A stretch of 64,000 nucleotides of DNA, taken from IMG/VR virus record IMGVR_UViG_3300042482_000702, positions 248,001-312,000 of that record. The stretch is one strand, 5' to 3'. Shown piece by piece: positions 13,532-46,428 of the stretch. The notes beneath the pieces were generated by a model. The model worked only from the letters and a program-made list of their open reading frames with translations, was not told where the DNA came from and ran no database searches. The translations under genes were made by a program, and so were the position numbers. Numbering within the stretch: the first letter of the stretch is position 1; every line of letters begins with the position of its first letter.

Positions 13532-13940
13532 GGGAGTGACACGGAATTGACTATTCGTAATAGTTATTCGGGGCACGTAGTGAGATGTTCTCTATCACTT
13601 AAATCTATGGGTACAACAATTTAGACGGAAACGTTTTAAACAAAATGGCTCTAGTAGGTCTTGTACGTCAAGATGAGCTTGTGAACGTAGCGTAAGCAAA
13701 CACACATTGGGGTCGACGGATATGTGTACCTAGCAACAGAAATATCTTAAGGTGTGATACCACCCGAAGAGTGTCAAGGTCTCGTTTGAGGGTCTACCTA
13801 TTAAAGTGAACCTCCCACAGTTGTAGGTAATGATGGAAAAATTAGAACCTTCTATTTGTCAGTTGAGAATTAACTGAATAAACGTGTAGTCCTTAATAGG
13901 TAATACAAATAACACTTGGGTTCGAGTCCCAACACTTCCA
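13532..13940 (+). ncRNA. ssrA: tmRNA
   Basis: Acceptor GGGAGTG/CACTTCC with G3-U70; 5' GGAATTGAC; T-arm TTGGG-TTCGAGT-CCCAA; internal tag ORF 13627..13695; smpB nearby. Confidence 0.92.
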
Positions 13941-14065
13941 CGTCCACTGGAGAGTCCCAACACCTCCACACAAAAAAGAGACCTAAATGGTCTCTTTTTT
14001 TATTGATAATCACCAATAAAAAAACCACCCGAAGGTGGCTTATTATCAGTTCAAATGTTTATTTT

Positions 14066-14998: not shown

Positions 14999-15883
14999 GG
15001 CTTAATACGATGAGAATACTCGTCTTATTGAGAATCTTCGGAAGGATTATTGTTTCCCTTCGTTTCCACCATCTTTTGAATGGTAACCCTCATTGCCGAT
15101 TGGTTAGACCAATCACTCCTTGAGATATCATCTACTCTCTCATTATTCAACTCTCTTTAACCTTGCGAGCTAACTCCGGATTCGACTCCGTAGAGGTTTT
15201 TGGCGAGAATACATTCAGACTTGCGGTCATCCTGTGCAACGAACGGCTCGTTACTATGTAGGCAACTTGTCGACGATACCTGGTAAACATTTTTGCTATT
15301 GTCTATTTAGTTTTTCACCATATGAAAATAGTTAATGTGTTGTGGATGTATTCAGGAAGTAGTTTACCGTAAGCTCCCTAACCTTTTGGGTTAAAGAATA
15401 CTAAACTTCCCGATGAGATATCCCTATCTCCAAATTTCAAGAATTCTTCAAATCAATATCTTGGTAGATATTTGATAGGGATAAAGTCAGCACCACCTGT
15501 TACTTAATCTTGCCTTTCGGCGTTAAGATTCCTTTTATTTTGGAACCCGCAATTATAAGGTCGGATAACCCTATTTCTTACTTGATTCCTATGGGTTCTT
15601 CTTATCTTGATTCCTCAATCAACCGGACAATCCACATTGCCAAGTTAGTATTCCATTTCCCTACGAAGTTATCCTCGGTACTACAGGACTACTAATATCC
15701 CACTTGCTTACTCGAGTTCGGTTTCCCAAACCACAAAATCACTAACACAAATGATTTCATTTTATCCCCGTTTCCGGGATTATTTAAAGATGATAAGCCA
15801 CCTATTATCTTTGATACAACACCGAAGTGTTATAATGGATAATCTAAAATTTCTAAGAACGTCTTTAAGGTTTCCCTTAATTG
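14963..15883 (-). ncRNA. Large (~920 nt) structured ncRNA, GOLLD-like candidate
   Basis: No credible ORF; own TAnnTTTG promoter (15889-15896) and terminator; many minus-strand GNRA/UUCG-capped hairpins. Confidence 0.7.
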
Positions 15884-16044: not shown

Positions 16045-16136
16045 GTGGTATCAGATGGATTCGAACCACCGGCACAGGGTTTTTCAGAACCCTTGCTCTA
16101 CCAAGGAAGATAAATCTCCCACTGAGCTATAATACC
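16045..16136 (-). tRNA. Atypical tRNA-Phe-like (GAA) with a hairpin inserted in the D-loop and an irregular anticodon loop
   Basis: Acceptor GGTATTA/TGATACC, normal T-arm, D-loop insert GGGAGATTTATCTTCC, anticodon arm AGGGT-TCTGAAAA-ACCCT. Confidence 0.6.
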
Positions 16137-16147
16137 ATATAAAATAA

Positions 16148-16222
16148 TGTGGGTGTATGCTCTACCATCTGAGCTACGGATTTGAAACCGGAGGGATTTG
16201 AAACCTCGACACAACACCCACA
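16148..16222 (-). ncRNA. Circularly permuted tRNA mimic (YrlA/Y-RNA-like) #2
   Basis: GTGGGTGT/ACACCCAC terminal helix; T-arm-like GAGG-TTTCAAAT-CCCTC; CGG-loop-CCG; D-arm TAGCTCAGATGGTAGAGC. Confidence 0.7.
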
Positions 16223-16300
16223 CCATTAATTCAATGAACTTATTTTCTTCTACAAAGATAATACATTTATTTTAATCTGTCAAATCTTTTTTGATTTTTT

Positions 16301-16510
16301 TTAATTCATATTATCCAAGAACATTTCGGTAATCTCATCTTCCTCTTCATCTGTCCCTTCGGCTCCGTTATGCCACTCTATATTATCTACAGTATAATCG
16401 TCCCAAGTATCCCAAAACGCGTGAATTGTAAATTCTCTTCCATCCTCTGTTTGACCATCATAATCGTAATTTGCTGAAGTTAGAACTTCGCTTGAATAAT
16501 TTATTTCCAT
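16301..16510 (-). CDS. Small acidic hypothetical protein
   Basis: ORF track. Confidence 0.6.
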   Translation of the reverse strand: MEINYSSEVLTSANYDYDGQTEDGREFTIHAFWDTWDDYTVDNIEWHNGAEGTDEEEDEITEMFLDNMN

Positions 16511-16530
16511 TTTTTCTTTTTTTTAATTAG

Positions 16531-16607
16531 TAGTCAGAACAGGATTCGAACCTGTGTACCCTCGTATGAGTTCGTCATACCGTGCATCTCCAATGTGCTA
16601 CCTGACT
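16531..16607 (-). ncRNA. tRNA-like RNA with non-canonical anticodon arm
   Basis: Acceptor AGTCAGG/TCTGACT and perfect T-arm ACAGG-TTCGAAT-CCTGT; anticodon arm TATGA-CGAAC-TCATA lacks U33. Confidence 0.55.
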
Positions 16608-34308: not shown

Positions 34309-34381
34309 TGGTCCCGGAGAATTACGATATCCCGACTTCTACATTATGAGTGTAGCACTCTAACCTCTGAGTTACGAGACC
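34309..34381 (-). tRNA. tRNA CAT (Ile2 or Met)
   Basis: Cloverleaf; loop CTCATAA; T-loop ATCGTAA. Confidence 0.8.
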
Positions 34382-34421
34382 AATTATGGGTTTTTAATGA
34401 ACCCATAAAACATATGTCAAT

Positions 34422-34655
34422 TTATTGGTGGTGCTTAATGTACCTCCCAAATTTATCAACCCTCACAGAGAGTTTCTCCAATCTAAAGTTCCAATTATCG
34501 AACTTTCCTAAGCCAGATTTTACTCTCGCCTGTTTAACCGCAGATACTTCTGCCTTCTCACGTCCTTCTTCCGTAGTTTCTACGAAAAAAGTGGGAGCCT
34601 GAACACCAGTCTTACTGGTAGGGACTACTCTCCAAATTCTCAATTTCTGAGTCAT
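34422..34655 (-). CDS. Small hypothetical protein in tRNA array
   Basis: ORF track. Confidence 0.55.
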   Translation of the reverse strand: MTQKLRIWRVVPTSKTGVQAPTFFVETTEEGREKAEVSAVKQARVKSGLGKFDNWNFRLEKLSVRVDKFGRYIKHHQ

Positions 34656-34830
34656 AAATTTTAGCTAATAGCTAAAACTATGTGGAGTTGGGTTGGTTGT
34701 TTTTCATATTAATTAGTTTAATTTTTTAAATAAAATGATGTTTAAATCTCCAAGTAAAAAAAAATACTGTTATTAGTAGTATTATCTTTATTACCTTAAT
34801 AATCTTTTTTCCCATATTGATAATATTTTG

Positions 34831-34915
34831 TATCCGGAGAGGGACTTGAACCCTCAATCTCCTTTCGGAAAACTAGATTTTAAGTCTAGCGTGTATACCA
34901 TTTCACCACCCAGAT
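34831..34915 (-). tRNA. tRNA-Leu(TAA)
   Basis: Loop CTTAAAA; long variable arm with GAAA. Confidence 0.9.
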
Positions 34916-35135
34916 GTGTTCCCCCAATGAGATTAGTTTGGGGTAGAATTTTTTCGGTTTTTCTATTCAAAAGTCGAGACGGTCTTACCCGCACATAAAA
35001 GTCAACTATTACTTGGAGGTGAGTTAGTATGCTCCCTTTTTTCCAAAGACCTCATCTATCAAACCGTTTGAGGCGTCAGCTACATCTTTGTTTAAGAAAC
35101 GATGCCAAATCTCTTGAGTATCTCTATCTCAATTG

Positions 35136-35216
35136 AGCTTCCGGTTGGATTCGAACCAACGTGCCATTCGGTCCTACTTACAAAATAGGTGCAATCAACC
35201 ACTATGCGACGGAAGC
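35136..35216 (-). tRNA. tRNA-Thr(TGT) with enlarged variable region
   Basis: Loop TTTGTAA; 12-nt variable region. Confidence 0.85.
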
Positions 35217-35426
35217 CTGTTGCAGAGTATTTTTTTTAAGTAGAAGTCAACTCTGTCTCTTAAACTACTAAAAGAAACTGTCCAAGGTCTATCCTGCTTT
35301 CGCTGTCCAGATTTTTCTCTGTTTCTTAAAACATCATCACTTCGGCCACATTGGGAGAACCGCAGTTCCCACGTTGTTTAAGGAGGTAGTTGGCGGTGTA
35401 TCACACCGAGTTATGATAATGTATTG

Positions 35427-35500
35427 TACCCCCAGTGAGAGTCGAACTCACAAAACTCTTCATCCTAAGTGAAGCGACTTTCCCGTTTGTCCACAGGGGT
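35427..35500 (-). tRNA. tRNA-Leu(TAG) with short variable loop
   Basis: Loop CTTAGGA; variable region AGTTTT. Confidence 0.85.
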
Positions 35501-35562
35501 AAATTGATGGGACTTTAACCCATCTGTTGACTATAACAAAAACATAAAGAAAGAAAAATTAG

Positions 35563-35684
35563 TAGTGTAGATAGGAATCGAACCTACCTCGATGAATTAC
35601 TTGTAATATGCACCAACTCTTCTCTCCAATCCTAGTATTAAGGAGTGTTACCTACAAATTACCATCACTCAACCCTTTTACACC
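35563..35684 (-). ncRNA. tRNA-like RNA: acceptor and T-arm, no D-stem, long irregular helix in place of the anticodon arm
   Basis: GGTGTA/TACACT; GTAGG-TTCGATT-CCTAT; GATG GTAATTTGTA ... TACAAGTAATT CATC. Confidence 0.6.
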
Positions 35685-35689
35685 ATTTG

Positions 35690-35761
35690 TGACTCCACAG
35701 GGATTCGAACCCCGATAATTTCCTTAGAAGAGAAATGTCCTATCCGTTGAACGATGGAGCC
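35690..35761 (-). tRNA. tRNA-Arg(TCT)
   Basis: Loop CTTCTAA. Confidence 0.9.
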
Positions 35762-35766
35762 AATTT

Positions 35767-35984
35767 ATTCTGTTACCGACATAGATTGGTAATTAAGTGT
35801 GAAAGCCCAAACCCTTTCACTCCCGTATTATCATCCTGCCACATTCTTGACGAATGCCGACGTTTTCACTTAACCTTCCGTTAGACATGCGAATCTATGT
35901 TTTCTGTATGTGGTGAGTAACTTCCTTCCCCACTTGTGTTTCCGAGATATCGAGGGCACCATACTGTCTAACGTCAAACAGAAT
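35767..35984 (-). ncRNA. Candidate ~220-nt pseudoknotted ncRNA
   Basis: Terminal 8-bp stem plus two crossing 9-bp helices. Confidence 0.55.
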
Positions 35985-36194
35985 ATAATTTTTAAAATAG
36001 TTTGACCAAATTTTTCACCATTGCGGTCTTAAGGAGCTATGACTTCATCTCCATGTCCGTTATGGGTAATTACTCCCAGATGGATGACCGGTGCGCCGTT
36101 GTCTTTCATCATACTTTTCACCAACCTATGTGTTAAAGGGTTCCGGCAGTGTCCCCGAAGGTTACTTCATATAATTACTTTTTCACTATTTTTG

Positions 36195-36266
36195 AGCGAA
36201 TGGAGGGAATCGAACCCTCATCCCTTGATTGGAAGTCAAGAGTAATGACCATTATACGACATTCGC
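36195..36266 (-). tRNA. tRNA-Gly(TCC)
   Basis: Loop CTTCCAA; U73. Confidence 0.92.
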
Positions 36267-36399
36267 AGTTTAGATGAACTTCGGACTTGTGTACCGAAAT
36301 GAGACCCAATAATTAAATCACTAACCCCGGGTGTGGTCTATTCATCTATTTTTTTAAGCTTATACCTTTAAAATAAATTTTAATTTTAAGCTTATAAGC

Positions 36400-36573
36400 T
36401 TAAACTTTCGTTTTAAGGTTGTTAATCTCCTTCTCGATTCTTTTCTTATCAGAATCAGTTAAAGGAATCTTGGTATTCATAGTACCCTTTTCGGTTTTTA
36501 CACCATTTTTTAATTGTTTCTCCAACACTTCAAGAACTCTTTGTTGTCTTGACCTTTTCGCTGCTGTTGCCAT
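36400..36573 (-). CDS. Small basic protein (57 aa, not in ORF track)
   Basis: MATAAKRSRQQRVLEVLEKQLK...INNLKTKV. Confidence 0.55.
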   Translation of the reverse strand: MATAAKRSRQQRVLEVLEKQLKNGVKTEKGTMNTKIPLTDSDKKRIEKEINNLKTKV

Positions 36574-36595
36574 ACGGATTTAGTTATTAAATTAG

Positions 36596-36668
36596 TAGCG
36601 TAGGGCAGGTAACGCTCCTGCTTTGGTCGGCTTATGAGACCGATGAGATACTATACCTCCCCCTCGCG
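36596..36668 (-). tRNA. tRNA-Met(CAT), initiator-like
   Basis: C1 mismatched with position 72; loop CTCATAA; T-loop AGCGTTA. Confidence 0.7.
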
Positions 36669-36683
36669 ATGTATTATTTTTTG

Positions 36684-36755
36684 CGGTCTATGAGAGAATC
36701 GAACTCTCATCTCTACCGTGACAGGGTAGCATCCTAGCCGTTGAACGAATAGACC
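36684..36755 (-). tRNA. tRNA-Asp(GTC)
   Basis: Loop CTGTCAC; G73. Confidence 0.92.
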
Positions 36756-36896
36756 AAAATTTTCAATCCAAAGGTGACAAACCTATAACAATTGAAAGAG
36801 AAAGAACCGTGTTTCCCGGGTAGTGACTTCCCGTATTCTGTCTTCCTGTTTTGTTTTACAAAGATAGTTATTAAATCTTTAATAACCAATTTTTTT

Positions 36897-37502
36897 TTAC
36901 ACCATTTTATTAAGTGTTGGTAAATACCATTTAAATCTCACCGCCATTACTCTAACTGATATAATCACTAATGAAGTGGTTAAATATAACACATCTGAGT
37001 TTAGGTTAAATTTCCTAAGTATGAAGAACACAATCCCCCCTAATATACAAATGGTAGCATATATTTCTTTTTTAAAGATAACCGGTATTTCAGCACATAG
37101 AATATCTCTAATCACACCACCAAAACAAGCGGTCATTGTACCTAATGCGATACATATAATGGGATGTAGACCAATGTTTATTCCTTTTTCTAACCCAATC
37201 AATGTGAATACCCCTAAACCGATTGTATCAAATATAAAAAGATATATTTTAAATTTCTCTATTAGTTGTTTGAATAATAATGTTACTATAAACCCTGTTA
37301 TTATTACATAGATATAATCTATGTTGAGCATCCATCCCACCGGTGTTCTTCCAATCATTACATCTCTCAGTGTTCCTCCACCTAATGCGGTTACGAATGT
37401 AATTATAAACACACCAAATAAATCCATTTTTTTATCTATGGATACTAAAGCTCCGGATATGGCAAATGCCAGTGTTCCTATTAGGTCTAATAAATTAAAC
37501 AT
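36897..37502 (-). CDS. TRIC/UPF0126 (YadS-like) membrane protein
   Basis: Duplicated GTLAFAISGA...GGGTLRD and GLGVF...FGGVIRD repeats. Confidence 0.9.
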   Translation of the reverse strand: MFNLLDLIGTLAFAISGALVSIDKKMDLFGVFIITFVTALGGGTLRDVMIGRTPVGWMLNIDYIYVIITGFIVTLLFKQLIEKFKIYLFIFDTIGLGVFTLIGLEKGINIGLHPIICIALGTMTACFGGVIRDILCAEIPVIFKKEIYATICILGGIVFFILRKFNLNSDVLYLTTSLVIISVRVMAVRFKWYLPTLNKMV

Positions 37503-37549
37503 TAATCATTTATTTTAAATTAATTGGTCTTAACAATAGACCTTTTTTG

Positions 37550-37621
37550 TGGAGCTACACGGTAACGCTCCGTGTTCTATGATTTGCAAAACCATTGTAA
37601 TTGCTTTTATACGACAGCCCC
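37550..37621 (-). tRNA. tRNA-Ala(TGC)
   Basis: G3-U70; loop TTTGCAA; T-loop AGCGTTA. Confidence 0.85.
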
Positions 37622-37682
37622 AATTTTGGATAGATGAGGTTCTATCCGGACCAGTACCTTCTCCCTTGGGAGATGTCAGTTG

Positions 37683-37754
37683 TAGCCCCACCGGGAGTCG
37701 AACCCGACTTTTATGGATGAAAACCATATGTCCTAACCGATAGACGATAGGGCC
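37683..37754 (-). tRNA. tRNA-Glu(TTC)
   Basis: Loop TTTTCAT. Confidence 0.9.
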
Positions 37755-38339: not shown

Positions 38340-38395
38340 AACCCTTTTATTTTTGACAAAGATACAACTTAATTTCATTCTACCAAATATAAATC

Positions 38396-38532
38396 AAAAA
38401 AAAAATCCACCTTTTTTTGAAGATGGATTTTTAAATATTTTTTTACTTAAATATATATCATACCATCGTCTTCCAAGTTGTATCTCTACCCTCAGTTCCC
38501 GCTATCGTAAGTAATATGTTTAAAGTTTGCAT
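38396..38532 (-). promoter_or_regulatory. Leader peptide (38458..38532) plus terminator: putative attenuator
   Basis: 24-aa ORF MQTLNILLTIAGTEGRDTTWKTMV; GAAGA/GATGG in the ORF can pair with the terminator arm CCATCTTC. Confidence 0.5.
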
Positions 38533-38662
38533 TTTTTGTGTTATTGTAATTTCTAATAAATATACGACATTTTGTGAAAGTGTCAAGTGGTTTTAAAATT
38601 ATTTTTTAAACTTAATCATAATTTAAGATATTTATAGTAAATAAACTTTTAAAAATTCAATT

Positions 38663-38833
38663 ATGAATAAAGAACAAATTTTTGGTGTTATTCGCCACGT
38701 ATTCACTGCCATTGGTGGTATTGTCATTGCACAAGGTTACATATCTGATAGTATGTACACTGAATTATCCGGAGCGATATTAACATTAACTGGTGTAATT
38801 TGGTCAATTGTTGCTAAAAAATCTACAGTATAA
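38663..38833 (+). CDS. Small two-TM putative holin (56 aa, not in ORF track)
   Basis: MNKEQIFGVIRHVFTAIGG...GVIWSIVAKK; TATTTATA upstream. Confidence 0.65.
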   Translation: MNKEQIFGVIRHVFTAIGGIVIAQGYISDSMYTELSGAILTLTGVIWSIVAKKSTV

Positions 38834-39597
38834 TAAACAGAAAAAGGTTAGAGAAATCTAACCTTTTTTTATGCCTTTAAGTTAAATAAAAAAAAGCTTA
38901 ACAACCCCGCCCTCGGGTCGTAGCGGGCAACTTGAGAATTACTTCTCGTGGGAATTCCGGAATTGGTTGTGTTCCTCACCGGCGTACCAGTCCTTATCTA
39001 TCCTTTAACCGTATTTCTACGGTGCTACTGTTGGGAGGTCACCCCTATCAACACACCTAGTCCATTAGTTTTTTAGAGTATGGACACCCCGGTTGTTAAA
39101 CTTTTTAATTTAATATTCTCTTACATAACGGCGATTATCGCCGGTATTAACCTAATTGGTAAATAAAAAAACAGACAATGGGGATTCTCCGATATTTCAG
39201 TCTTAGGGGACTAGACGGGCATCATACCCGTGTTTACCCTCGGCGGTCTCTTGGTTTGGTTGATTACTCCAAACCTCACCCCTACACTACCACTGACGTA
39301 AGTTATAGGTCTGTTTTTAATTCTTTGTAAAACAACAGACGGCTTTGAAGTACATCCACACCAACAATTATGACCGACTTCACCTTATGTGGAAGTTTAG
39401 TTTTACAATATCTATCAAGATTTACCCCAGTCTTTAGGTCGCTATTAATACCTTTAACCCATACTCTCGGAACACTATGGAGATGGAATCAAACCATCTA
39501 ATAACCCGTCGGTTATAGCGTCAGCCTTATATTTCCTATCTTTTGGAGATAACTTTCGTCTGTCACCTTATTCAACCTTATATGAATAAATCTTTTG

Positions 39598-39704
39598 CCC
39601 TTCCAGTGGGAATCGAACCCACATACTCTTAATACATTCTTGGAATGGTTACCGGAGGGAGATGTATTCGTCTCTGTGTTTTGCTCTTTTTAAACTACAG
39701 AAGG
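39598..39704 (-). ncRNA. tRNA-like RNA with an expanded anticodon arm
   Basis: Acceptor CCTTCTG/TGGAAGG; D- and T-arms present; about 55-nt central region with AATACAT/ATGTATT helix. Confidence 0.55.
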
Positions 39705-39782: not shown

Positions 39783-40430
39783 TTATTTTAACCATTTTCT
39801 AACAGCGTTATCACTAACACCATATTTACGACCTGTTCCTCTATACCCAAGATTAATAATATCTTGTTTTATTTGTTCTATGGACGGTCTTTCAACTTTT
39901 CTATTTTGTTTATTTGAACATTTAATACATTTATCACTTTTTTTATCTTTTGTACTACCACATTCACAATGATATTTAATTTTATTGGATTTCCCGGAAT
40001 ATGTACTAGTTTGGGAGTGACAATTAGGACATAAAAATCTTAAATTTTCTATTCTATTATCATTATTAACTCCATTTATATGGTCTAAATGTAGACTAAT
40101 ATTTTTACCATTCCACACCCCATTATTACCACATTCAATACATTTATATTCAAGTAAATTTTTCTTTAATATTCTATTTTTAATTTTTTGTCTTGGAAAT
40201 GTTGAATTTTCAACAAAAACATCCTCATCTAATCTAACCTCTTTAGGTCCAGTCCCATAATAATTATATTTAGGAATCTCTAATCCCAATTTAATTATTC
40301 TATCTTTAATGTTCCTATAACCACCCGAACCATTTGGTGATAAATTAAATAATAAAATAACCTCTCTCATAGATTTTGAATTATTCAAAATTTCAAATAA
40401 CTCTTCTTTTGTAATAGTTTTTAAGTTCAT
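39783..40430 (-). CDS. HNH homing endonuclease inside the tRNA array
   Basis: CIECG...LHLDHINGVNNDNRIENLRFLCPNCHSQT; C-terminal HTH. Confidence 0.9.
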   Translation of the reverse strand: MNLKTITKEELFEILNNSKSMREVILLFNLSPNGSGGYRNIKDRIIKLGLEIPKYNYYGTGPKEVRLDEDVFVENSTFPRQKIKNRILKKNLLEYKCIECGNNGVWNGKNISLHLDHINGVNNDNRIENLRFLCPNCHSQTSTYSGKSNKIKYHCECGSTKDKKSDKCIKCSNKQNRKVERPSIEQIKQDIINLGYRGTGRKYGVSDNAVRKWLK

Positions 40431-42297: not shown

Positions 42298-42807
42298 TTA
42301 AAAAAATAAATAAGGTTCCCATTCTTTTGGGATATCGTGATGAACTTGTTTCATTAACATCAGATAATGTGGTCGTCTTGGTTGAGGTATGTCTTTACCA
42401 TATTCCTCTAACGTCAAATTGGACTTCTCACCGTTACATCTCCTACAAGCGGTAACCAAGTTGTCCCAACTATCTTTACCCCCCTTAGATTGGGGTACTA
42501 CATGGTCTAATGTTAATGTCTTTCTGTTATTACACCCACAATATACACATTCAAAGTTATCTCTACGATAAACATTCTCTCTATTTAAAGGAACTTTTTG
42601 TATGATTTGATTAACATACTTATATACCCGAATGATTGATGGTTTTTTGATGTCCAATTCAGGATTTACTAATTTGAATGATTCCGGATGTTCGTTTATA
42701 ACATCGGCATTACCTTTATAAGAAATGACGAAAGCCCTCTCTGTGGAAATAATACTCCTCGCCATGAAACTTGAATCTAAAACCAAAGTTTTTTGGTAAC
42801 TACTCAC
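42298..42807 (-). CDS. HNH endonuclease (McrA-like)
   Basis: RDNFECVYCG...TLDHVVPQSKGGKDSWDNLVTACRRCN. Confidence 0.9.
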   Translation of the reverse strand: MSSYQKTLVLDSSFMARSIISTERAFVISYKGNADVINEHPESFKLVNPELDIKKPSIIRVYKYVNQIIQKVPLNRENVYRRDNFECVYCGCNNRKTLTLDHVVPQSKGGKDSWDNLVTACRRCNGEKSNLTLEEYGKDIPQPRRPHYLMLMKQVHHDIPKEWEPYLFF

Positions 42808-45929: not shown

Positions 45930-46019
45930 ATTTTATTCTTACCAATATGTCAAATAACTAATTCCTTTATTTTGATGGGACAAAGGTAATCCTTTTTTTT
46001 TAACTTCCAAACTTTTTTA

Positions 46020-46201
46020 TAAAAAAAAATCCCGAACTTTTTGAGTTCAGGATTTTGGTTATATTTTATGTTTAACTTTTATATTGTCGTTAAATCATTT
46101 AATAAACTATCTGAACTTGTATGCGAAATACGCGGATACGAACAATTACTAAATTGTTGGTTCCAAATCACGACATTCATATGTTTATTAGTATTTTTCA
46201 T
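46020..46201 (-). promoter_or_regulatory. Leader peptide (46079..46201) plus terminator/antiterminator: putative attenuator
   Basis: 40-aa ORF; AGTTCAG in the ORF is complementary to the terminator arm CTGAACT; upstream TTTG...TAAGTTTG promoter. Confidence 0.55.
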
Positions 46202-46428
46202 TTTTCTTTTTTTTGTGGTATCTCTACCTGTGTTTCTTATAATTATATCAAACTTACGAAAAGTTTAAATAGTTGTCAAATTTTTTTCAATAATTTTATT
46301 TAACTCCTCTATGTGGTACTCCTCCATCCATTCAGCAATTTTACTGTTGGTATCAGCAAAAACACCAAATTCCTTGAAATGTTCCTCTTGTTTTTTATCT
46401 AAAAAAATTTTAGCATTAATGTCGTCCA

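Follow-up and report, generated by a model that had tools for sequence, protein, structure and literature searches.

A short transcription unit (referred to here as unit 1), which precedes a block of tRNA genes in the genome of a large freshwater phage, probably functions as a ribosome-mediated leader-peptide transcription attenuator. Its anatomy, its conservation as a family in related phages, the covariation of both of its alternative helices, and its abutment on a tRNA gene in several of the relatives are shown by the results presented below. The translation of its ORF, the direction of the switch and the logic by which it would sense tRNAs are only inferred, and in the absence of direct expression data the same applies to the dependence of termination on translation. 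The evidence from the family is much stronger than that provided by the stretch of DNA in which the unit was identified.

Genomic setting and anatomy of unit 1

The stretch of DNA analysed in this work (the window; 64,000 nucleotides) spans bases 248001-312000 of a virus record that has 322,477 bp and is rated complete. It has a G+C content of about 32% and contains about 26 tRNA genes, nearly all of them on the minus strand, as well as a tmRNA and a GOLLD RNA. In the whole genome, TAnnTTTG motifs are enriched 10-50 nt upstream of the long ORFs, and no enrichment of Shine-Dalgarno-like motifs is seen in front of these ORFs; these two observations suggest, by inference, a host of the Bacteroidota type. 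Unit 1 is an element of a 322-kb phage, which itself is probably a phage of Bacteroidota.

The elements of unit 1, and those of a second leader unit, are listed in Table 1. The original prediction had described a 24-codon ORF ending 25 nt before a U-tailed terminator, and this part of it has held, with all of these elements on the minus strand and 25 nt separating the stop codon from the hairpin stem. Promoter P1, which that description did not include, matches the promoter consensus at 11 of 12 positions and is also compatible with the Bacteroidota-type pattern TTG-N19-TAnnTTTa. The 5' UTR lacks a Shine-Dalgarno sequence. Leader ORF 1 holds 6 Thr codons and 1 Trp codon, and its codons 3-19, which include codons of the block 1 tRNAs, form the putative sensor zone. 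Within segment 2, the variable bases 38469-38468 (positions 1-2 of codon 22) are unpaired, whereas G 38467 is fixed and pairs with a C of the terminator arm. The terminator hairpin by itself has a stability of -12.7 to -13.2 kcal/mol and a predicted probability of formation near 1. The presence of downstream promoters, which was also claimed originally, is confirmed for the window by P2, whose motif is kept in the relatives. P2 is followed by a lipoprotein-like gene (ATG 38339), two more small ORFs and tRNA-Glu, so that P2, three small ORFs and about 0.7 kb lie between the terminator of the window and tRNA-Glu. An antisense ORF at 38353-38514 (+) was also considered and was dismissed, because changes in the length of an A-run shift its frame in the relatives.

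Table 1. Positions in the window of the two leader units, the tRNA blocks and other features of the tRNA island
Feature	Position	Strand	Remarks
Promoter P1	38559-38586	-	TTGACA (38586-38581), 16-nt spacer, TATATT (38564-38559)
5' UTR, unit 1	38533-38552	-	~20 nt, A-rich, unstructured; transcription start inferred, unmeasured
Leader ORF 1	38458-38532	-	ATG 38532, TGA 38460-38458; 24 sense codons, MQTLNILLTIAGTEGRDTTWKTMV
Segment 2 (anti-terminator 5' strand)	38463-38473	-	GAAG-AC-GATGG, codons 20-24
Segment 3 (terminator 5' arm)	38419-38432	-	AAAAATCCATCTTC; partner is segment 2 or segment 4
Segment 4 (terminator 3' arm) and U-tract	38396-38411	-	GGTGGATTTTT
Terminator hairpin, unit 1	38432-38401	-	AAAAATCCATCTTC-AAAAAAA-GGTGGATTTTT, then T-run to ~38396
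Promoter P2	38357-38387	-	TTTG (38387-38384), N19, TATCTTTG (38364-38357)
tRNA block 1 (proposed regulated genes)	34309-37754	-	Glu(ttc), Asp(gtc), Gly(tcc), Arg(tct), Leu(tag), Thr(tgt), Leu(taa), CAT-anticodon tRNA (34309-34381); same order in relatives
Second leader unit (unit 2)	46017-46279	-	before tRNA block 2
Unit 2 promoter-like sequence	46279-46242	-	TTGACA...TATAAT
Unit 2 leader ORF	46201-46079	-	40 codons, MKNTNKHMNVVIWNQQFSNCSYPRISHTSSDSLLNDLTTI
Unit 2 segment 2	46118-46111	-	AAGTTCAG; complements terminator arm
Unit 2 terminator	46056-46026	-	then T-run
tRNA block 2	45929-39710	-	downstream of unit 2; Ser, Gln, Met, Val, Tyr, Phe, Asn, His, Arg, Pro, Pro, Ile, Lys ... Cys, Trp
Membrane protein gene	36897-37502	-	201 aa, Pfam Gly_transporter (PF03458, E=2e-47)
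Predicted membrane protein gene	38663-38833	+	56 aa
Structured RNA	38892-39103	-	~212 nt
Structured RNA	39172-39320	-	~149 nt
tRNA-like sequence	39597-39690	-	perfect T-arm and acceptor end
HNH endonuclease gene	39783-40430	-	
HNH endonuclease gene	42298-42807	-	
tmRNA	13532-13943	+	phage-encoded, 62 bits
GOLLD RNA	15007-15413	-	full-length, 288 bits
Further tRNA genes	16046-16607		

No leader family was found for unit 1 in Rfam, either at the gathering threshold or at E<=10; the sole match to Thr_leader (RF00506; 19 bits, E=1) lies on the opposite strand at 38821-38871. Unit 1 was also unmatched in blastn searches of the INPHARED phage records, an exact match to its core motif is lacking in 185,579 prokaryote genomes (GTDB), and its own phage genome contains neither a paralogue of it nor a complementary stretch of 16 nt or longer.

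Conservation of unit 1 within its clade

Three independent anchor patterns searched in IMG/VR and one in the JGI metagenomes yielded 25 distinct variants of unit 1 in the clade of the window, and entries in protein databases added two further variants. A search with the back-translated peptide returned only contigs that were already known, and it revealed no copies in which the peptide is conserved and the DNA diverged; a homologue search with a 543-aa protein likewise retrieved close relatives only. In at least 25 variants unit 1 is single-copy and syntenic, always being located on the tRNA strand between tRNA-Cys/Trp and tRNA-Glu, and in the close relatives it sits 0.3-0.9 kb upstream of tRNA-Glu. 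Its identity of 94-99% is the highest of the neighbourhood, in which tRNA-Glu shows 73-97% and the neighbouring small genes 75-99%. The hexamers of P1 are invariant or nearly so in the 25 variants, whereas the sequence of the spacer varies. The conserved block extends from 2 nt before the ATG to 7 nt past the stop codon, and leader ORF 1 is intact in every variant of the clade, one of which carries an in-frame insertion of 3 nt.

Within the clade, pS and pN of leader ORF 1 are 0.033 and 0.031, respectively, whereas pS of the flanking genes is 0.21 and 0.42. Third positions vary in only 2 of the 24 codons, as compared to 28/56 and 27/45 in the neighbouring genes, and the synonymous sites of the leader are 6-13 times more conserved than those of its neighbours. 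The sole hot spot is codon 22 (ACG, TCG, CAG or GAG), in which positions 1-2 vary and the G at the third position is fixed. Such a pattern of substitution is unlike that of a protein, and the conservation of synonymous sites exceeds what an attenuator model requires and is not fully explained by it. If one had to rely on the data from the clade only, there would be little to choose between an attenuator and either a small RNA or a micro-gene.

Possible pairing of the ORF end with the terminator arm in the window

According to the original prediction, the 3' end of the ORF is complementary to the 5' arm of the terminator. This complementarity is present, as GAAGACGATGG (38473-38463) can pair with CCATCTTC (38426-38419) with a 3-nt bulge. 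However, the helix as it was drawn amounts to only -3.3 kcal/mol, and the best duplex between the ORF and the arm in the window (-6.9 kcal/mol) is equalled by 19-29% of random 107-nt genomic windows; when the pairing of the arm is limited to the last 7 codons of the ORF, p is about 0.03. When the nascent RNA is modelled, a probability of about 0.95 is obtained for the pairing of the core GAUGG:CCAUC. Taken by itself, the complementarity in the window cannot be distinguished from chance, and the pairing acquires its significance only across the family, through covariation.

In the clade of the window, the anti-terminator (-6.9 to -8.2 kcal/mol, versus -12.7 for the terminator) is the weakest of the family, and the variable spot of the clade falls inside the pairing strand (segment 2). 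The GAG allele of codon 22 restores a helix of 8 bp with a stability of -11.9 kcal/mol, and the lineage represented by L004 and L074 breaks 2 of the 8 anti-terminator pairs. An anti-antiterminator hairpin between segments 1 and 2 is missing: the best 1:2 duplex (-4.5 kcal/mol) is worse than those of 90% of random windows, and the region of ORF 1 folds no better than its shuffles (z=+0.6). The four-segment model of the trp type is therefore ruled out, as its 1:2 pairing does not exist. The lack of this hairpin bears on the four-segment subtype and not on ribosome-mediated attenuation as such; without it, a leader that is untranslated is expected to read through, which differs from attenuators of the trp type.

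A wider family in which both helices covary

Diverged copies were found by searching the DNA of the unit against the full records of more distant phages, and a scan with the P1 pattern returned 108 stretches and retrieved the whole family. In the tRNA islands of related metagenomic phages, the family is represented by no fewer than 33 different leader peptides, encoded by 22-28 codons (such as MQTLNTLLLTIGAEGRDTTRSEMV, MKNLHISLIGGDLAEDSFKERV and MKNLHIILLGGLAIAEDRSYKEMV). A U-tailed hairpin with a stability of -10 to -18 kcal/mol is found 11-31 nt past the stop codon of the leader in 31 of the 33 variants; the exceptions are the L112 type, in which the ORF is kept and the terminator has been lost, and L150, whose sequence ends 32 nt after the stop.

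Despite complete turnover of the sequence, a three-way covariation links the final 3-4 codons of the ORF to both the 5' and the 3' arm of the terminator. In the covarying classes the 3' end of the ORF and the 5' arm of the terminator read, respectively, GGAGATGG and CCATCTCC, GGAGAGGG and CCCTCTCC, GAAGAGGG and CCCTCTTC, GAAGTTCAG and CTGAACTTC, and TAGTTCGG and CCTCGGACTA. Duplex energies were computed for the first four of these classes and not for the last, whose pairing was read by eye. In classes II-IV, the duplexes of segment 2 with segment 3 have energies of -10 to -17 kcal/mol (p 0.000-0.03 versus random 21-mers of the same locus). In an alignment of 27 distinct units (A5), the anti-terminator helix is 94% paired, whereas sliding of the partner reduces this to 42-64%; both sides have changed in 4 of its 8 pairs, and none of 500 shuffles attains its covariation score. 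The terminator helix is equally supported by compensatory changes. Column 72 of this alignment, which belongs to the terminator arm, covaries with its partner in both of the helices, and this is the signature of helices that are mutually exclusive. Due to this covariation and to the lack of conservation of the peptides in the diverged homologues, the readings of the unit as purely a small RNA or purely a micro-protein are weakened.

What the family keeps in its ORFs is the ATG, the length, the N-terminal M-(K/Q)-x-L and the codons of segment 2; the middle is not kept. The variable columns of the family alignment are distributed over the three codon positions as 19/19/18 of 25. This even spread, together with the retention of the start, the length and segment 2, is the pattern of a leader whose translation matters and whose product does not. 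In this manner the idea that the position of the ribosome sets read-through toward the downstream genes and tRNAs is supported by the data for the family; neither translation nor termination is shown directly.

Genes downstream of the terminator

Every unit of the family is found within a tRNA island and on the strand of the tRNAs, and two arrangements are seen downstream. In arrangement A (L111, L128, L133, L136 and L169), tRNA-Leu(taa) begins about 25 nt beyond the U-tail, and the intervening stretch is a conserved tRNA 5' leader, GTTCTTTGA(A/C)ATATTGGT. In these five phages no promoter is present between the terminator and tRNA-Leu(taa), P2 being absent, and this tRNA gene is therefore reachable only by read-through. 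In arrangement B, which is that of the other loci including the window, a promoter P2 of the form TTTG-N19-TAnnTTTG follows the terminator, sometimes along with inserted small genes.

The motif (G)GTTCTTTGA(A/C)ATATTGGT is located immediately 5' of the first tRNA after the leader unit, with sites at 45930-45960 (-) of the window, at 1680-1705 of L111, and in L128, L133, L136 and L169. As it is transcribed from P2 where that promoter is present, it resembles a tRNA 5'-leader or processing element and not a promoter.

Codon content of the leaders and the second leader unit

Unit 2, the second leader unit of the window, precedes tRNA block 2 (Table 1). Its ORF is kept in the relatives up to segment 2, and the tail beyond varies both in sequence and in length. 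In the 322 kb, exact copies of the 11-mer GGTAGAGATAC are present at two places only, in the ORF of unit 1 (38490, -) and in the 5' UTR of unit 2 (46228, -), where about 0.03 occurrences are expected per strand. The same G/A polymorphism of GGTAGAGATAC is seen at both sites in the relatives. The attenuator model does not fully explain the sharing of this 11-mer between the two units.

The codons of the leaders correspond to the tRNAs of the blocks that follow them. Residues 7-19 of leader 1 (LLTIAGTEGRDTT) use the amino acids of block 1, plus Ala in the relatives. None of the amino acids of block 1 is missing from leader 1, which also has the isoacceptor-specific codons AGA and ATA. Residues 2-27 of leader 2 contain all 14 amino acids of block 2 and only one other residue. 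The Arg and Ile codons fit the isoacceptor of the leader's own block, being AGA and ATA in leader 1 versus CGT and ATT in leader 2. In L177, the stretch FHIEFSSQQEICW precedes tRNAs for Glu, Phe, Cys, Ile, Trp, Met, Gln, His and Ser. The enrichment in Thr that had been pointed out originally is meaningful, as Thr codons are frequent only in those leaders that have tRNA-Thr(tgt) downstream and are rare or absent in the leaders that lack it.

The residues that match the downstream block number 15/23 in unit 1 (P=0.013), 30/39 in unit 2 (P=0.03) and 18/27 in L177 (P=9e-4). The amino acids of the block are covered completely by the leader in three units (7/7, 14/14 and 9/9, with coverage P of 0.042, 0.0035 and 0.0019), the coverage of 14/14 with P=0.0035 being that of unit 2. 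The true pairing of leaders with blocks ranks best among 120 permutations, and a 2x2 Fisher test of leader and block composition gives P=0.0027. For L128 the match in composition falls short of significance (P=0.21), and for L187 it is borderline (P=0.05). A logic in which the leader samples the codons served by its block is supported by these data to a moderate extent and is not established by them.

Proposed mechanism

In the mechanism that we propose, the polymerase would initiate at P1 and the 24-codon ORF of the short leader would be translated. Segment 2, formed by the last 3-4 codons, is complementary to segment 3, the 5' arm of the intrinsic terminator. A fast ribosome reaching the stop codon would mask segment 2, and segments 3 and 4 would then form the terminator, leading to a stop of transcription. 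However, if the ribosome were delayed anywhere from codon 2 to about codon 17 because the cognate tRNA is scarce, or if the leader were untranslated, segment 2 would pair with segment 3, no terminator would form and the polymerase would continue into the tRNA genes. As most of the sensor codons are decoded by tRNAs of the downstream block, such a circuit would constitute a negative feedback on the supply of tRNAs.

The distances in this proposal rest on the established footprint sizes of ribosomes. With its A site on the stop codon, a ribosome would cover segment 2, which ends 3 nt before the stop, and it would fall short of the terminator arm, typically located at least 15 nt downstream, so that the terminator would form. 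A ribosome held at codon 17 or earlier would leave segment 2 free to capture the arm. In the window itself the switch is probably weak, because its anti-terminator is degenerate, and it would add to the independent promoter P2; the additive control suggested by the original prediction is in line with this inferred role.

A bolder reading is that sampler leaders, containing about one codon for each tRNA species encoded downstream, govern the tRNA islands of phages. According to it, slow decoding of any of the sampled codons would free the anti-terminator and the whole tRNA block would be switched on. The case for this reading and the case against it are presently of similar weight.

Parts of the stretch are contained in fourteen runs recorded as RNA, and contigs from one metatranscriptome cover 38397-38528. 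As transcript ends, strand and level cannot be read from contigs, and such libraries may also contain DNA, nothing is concluded from them regarding expression or termination.

Alternative explanations

Of the other explanations for unit 1, one is that it represents an autonomous micro-gene, whose product is the 24-residue peptide, whose hairpin is constitutive and in which the resemblance between the end of the ORF and the terminator is incidental. In its favour are the unit's own promoter and strong terminator, with P2 restarting transcription in the window, the intactness of the ORF in all variants including that with the in-frame 3-nt insertion, the retention of the ORF without a terminator in the L112-type loci, and the conservation of the hydrophobic pattern M..L.I.L and of a terminal V. 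However, the peptide is equally variable at the three codon positions (19/19/18), pN and pS in the clade are nearly the same (0.031 vs 0.033), and at the hot spot positions 1-2 vary with position 3 fixed, which is the reverse of coding logic. Further, no peptide-conserved, DNA-diverged copies were found by the back-translated peptide search, and the three-way covariation of the ORF end with both arms of the terminator would be left without a reason, and this explanation is considered unlikely. Even less credible is a non-coding, trans-acting small RNA of about 155 nt, consisting of an unstructured conserved 5' seed and a terminator hairpin, with the ORF being fortuitous. The extension of nucleotide-level conservation to synonymous sites (2/24 variable third positions, against 28/56 and 27/45 in the neighbours), the unstructured nature of the conserved region, the presence of RNA genes (tRNAs and the two structured RNAs at 38892-39320) as neighbours, and the coverage of the unit by metatranscriptome contigs are all consistent with it. 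However, the start of the ORF, its length of 22-28 codons and its stop just past segment 2 are kept across widely diverged classes, the limits of the conserved block match the ORF (2 nt before the ATG to 7 nt after the stop), the covariation is intramolecular, and no complementary target of 16 nt or longer exists in the phage genome, nor any copy in 185,579 prokaryote genomes.

It can also be argued that the family descends from a switch but that the attenuator of this particular clade is a relic, in which the terminator is constitutive and P2 alone drives the downstream genes and tRNAs. The anti-terminator of the clade is indeed the weakest of the family, CTCC has been replaced by CTTC in its arm, codon 22 drifts among ACG, TCG, CAG and GAG, and P2 and the inserted small genes lie between the terminator and tRNA-Glu. 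However, the identity of 94-99%, which includes the promoter hexamers and all of the sensor codons, points to continuing selection. Further, every allele has kept the G that pairs with the arm, and the GAG allele restores the 8-bp helix (-11.9 kcal/mol). This explanation is also regarded as improbable.

Relationship to known systems and significance

The preferred reading, that of a ribosome-mediated attenuator, places unit 1 beside the classical leader-peptide attenuators (trp, his, leu, thr, ilv and pheA; e.g. RF00506). As in these, a short promoter-proximal ORF is followed by an intrinsic terminator located before the regulated genes, the 5' arm of the terminator can alternatively pair with an upstream segment, the position of the ribosome would decide which helix forms, and the regulatory codons relate to the regulated genes. 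However, the classical attenuators regulate biosynthetic enzymes, whereas the targets of unit 1 would be phage tRNA genes; their sensor is a run of one amino acid, whereas that proposed here consists of mixed codons for many amino acids; and unit 1 has three segments only, without a 1:2 hairpin, with segment 2 lying inside the last codons of the ORF. The unit also shows no sequence match to the leader families of Rfam. The pheST attenuator of E. coli applies leader-peptide attenuation to a component of the translation apparatus, as unit 1 would; it acts on a synthetase via Phe codons only, whereas tRNA genes lie downstream of unit 1 and several amino acids would be sampled. T-box riboswitches likewise sense the status of tRNAs and choose between a terminator and an anti-terminator, but in them the uncharged tRNA is bound directly and neither a ribosome nor an ORF is involved, and no specifier loop, T-box sequence or T-box match in Rfam was found for unit 1. 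The tRNA cluster of phage T4 also yields small stable RNAs that are not tRNAs (species 1 and 2); it is not known to contain a leader ORF or attenuator, and the units of the window differ from these RNAs in having their own promoter, ORF and terminator.

No description of leader-peptide attenuation of phage tRNA genes was found in the literature searched (full text). The type of mechanism is itself known; what is likely new is its application to tRNA genes, in phages, and with a sensor for multiple amino acids. Large phages carry dozens of tRNA genes and the control of their expression is largely unknown. If the proposal is correct, an attenuator that reads the codons served by the downstream tRNAs would provide a simple and testable feedback on tRNA supply, and if the sampler reading is also true, it would be a homeostat for this supply during infection, of a kind undescribed for tRNA genes or phages. 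For annotation, a short ORF whose end mimics the 3' arm of a terminator, located upstream of tRNA arrays, can serve as a signature in the tRNA islands of metagenomic phages.

Other features of the tRNA island

Several other features of the island are listed in Table 1. Two HNH endonuclease genes are present within it, and the small genes located between the tRNAs have been gained and lost among the relatives. The 201-aa membrane protein is encoded between tRNA-Glu and tRNA-Asp. The gene for the 56-aa predicted membrane protein is divergent from leader unit 1; this protein is common in other metagenomic phages at about 50% identity, and the distant homologues of its gene (L010-L031) have no leader unit adjoining them. 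The gene is missing from several close relatives, in which a structured RNA abuts P1. The tRNA-like sequence at 39597-39690 was missed by standard scans and was called as tRNA-Trp(cca) with a 27-nt intron by ARAGORN when introns were allowed and the threshold was lowered. The tmRNA and the GOLLD RNA are both close to the further tRNA genes at 16046-16607.

The two structured RNAs at 38892-39320 are G+C-rich, and neither has a match in Rfam at E<=10. Each of them is closed by a long stem between its 5' and 3' ends, with a U-run after it, and several compensatory pairs are seen among the relatives in both. The RNA-library contigs of two runs (X3 and X4) cover the structured RNA at 38892-39103 nearly alone.
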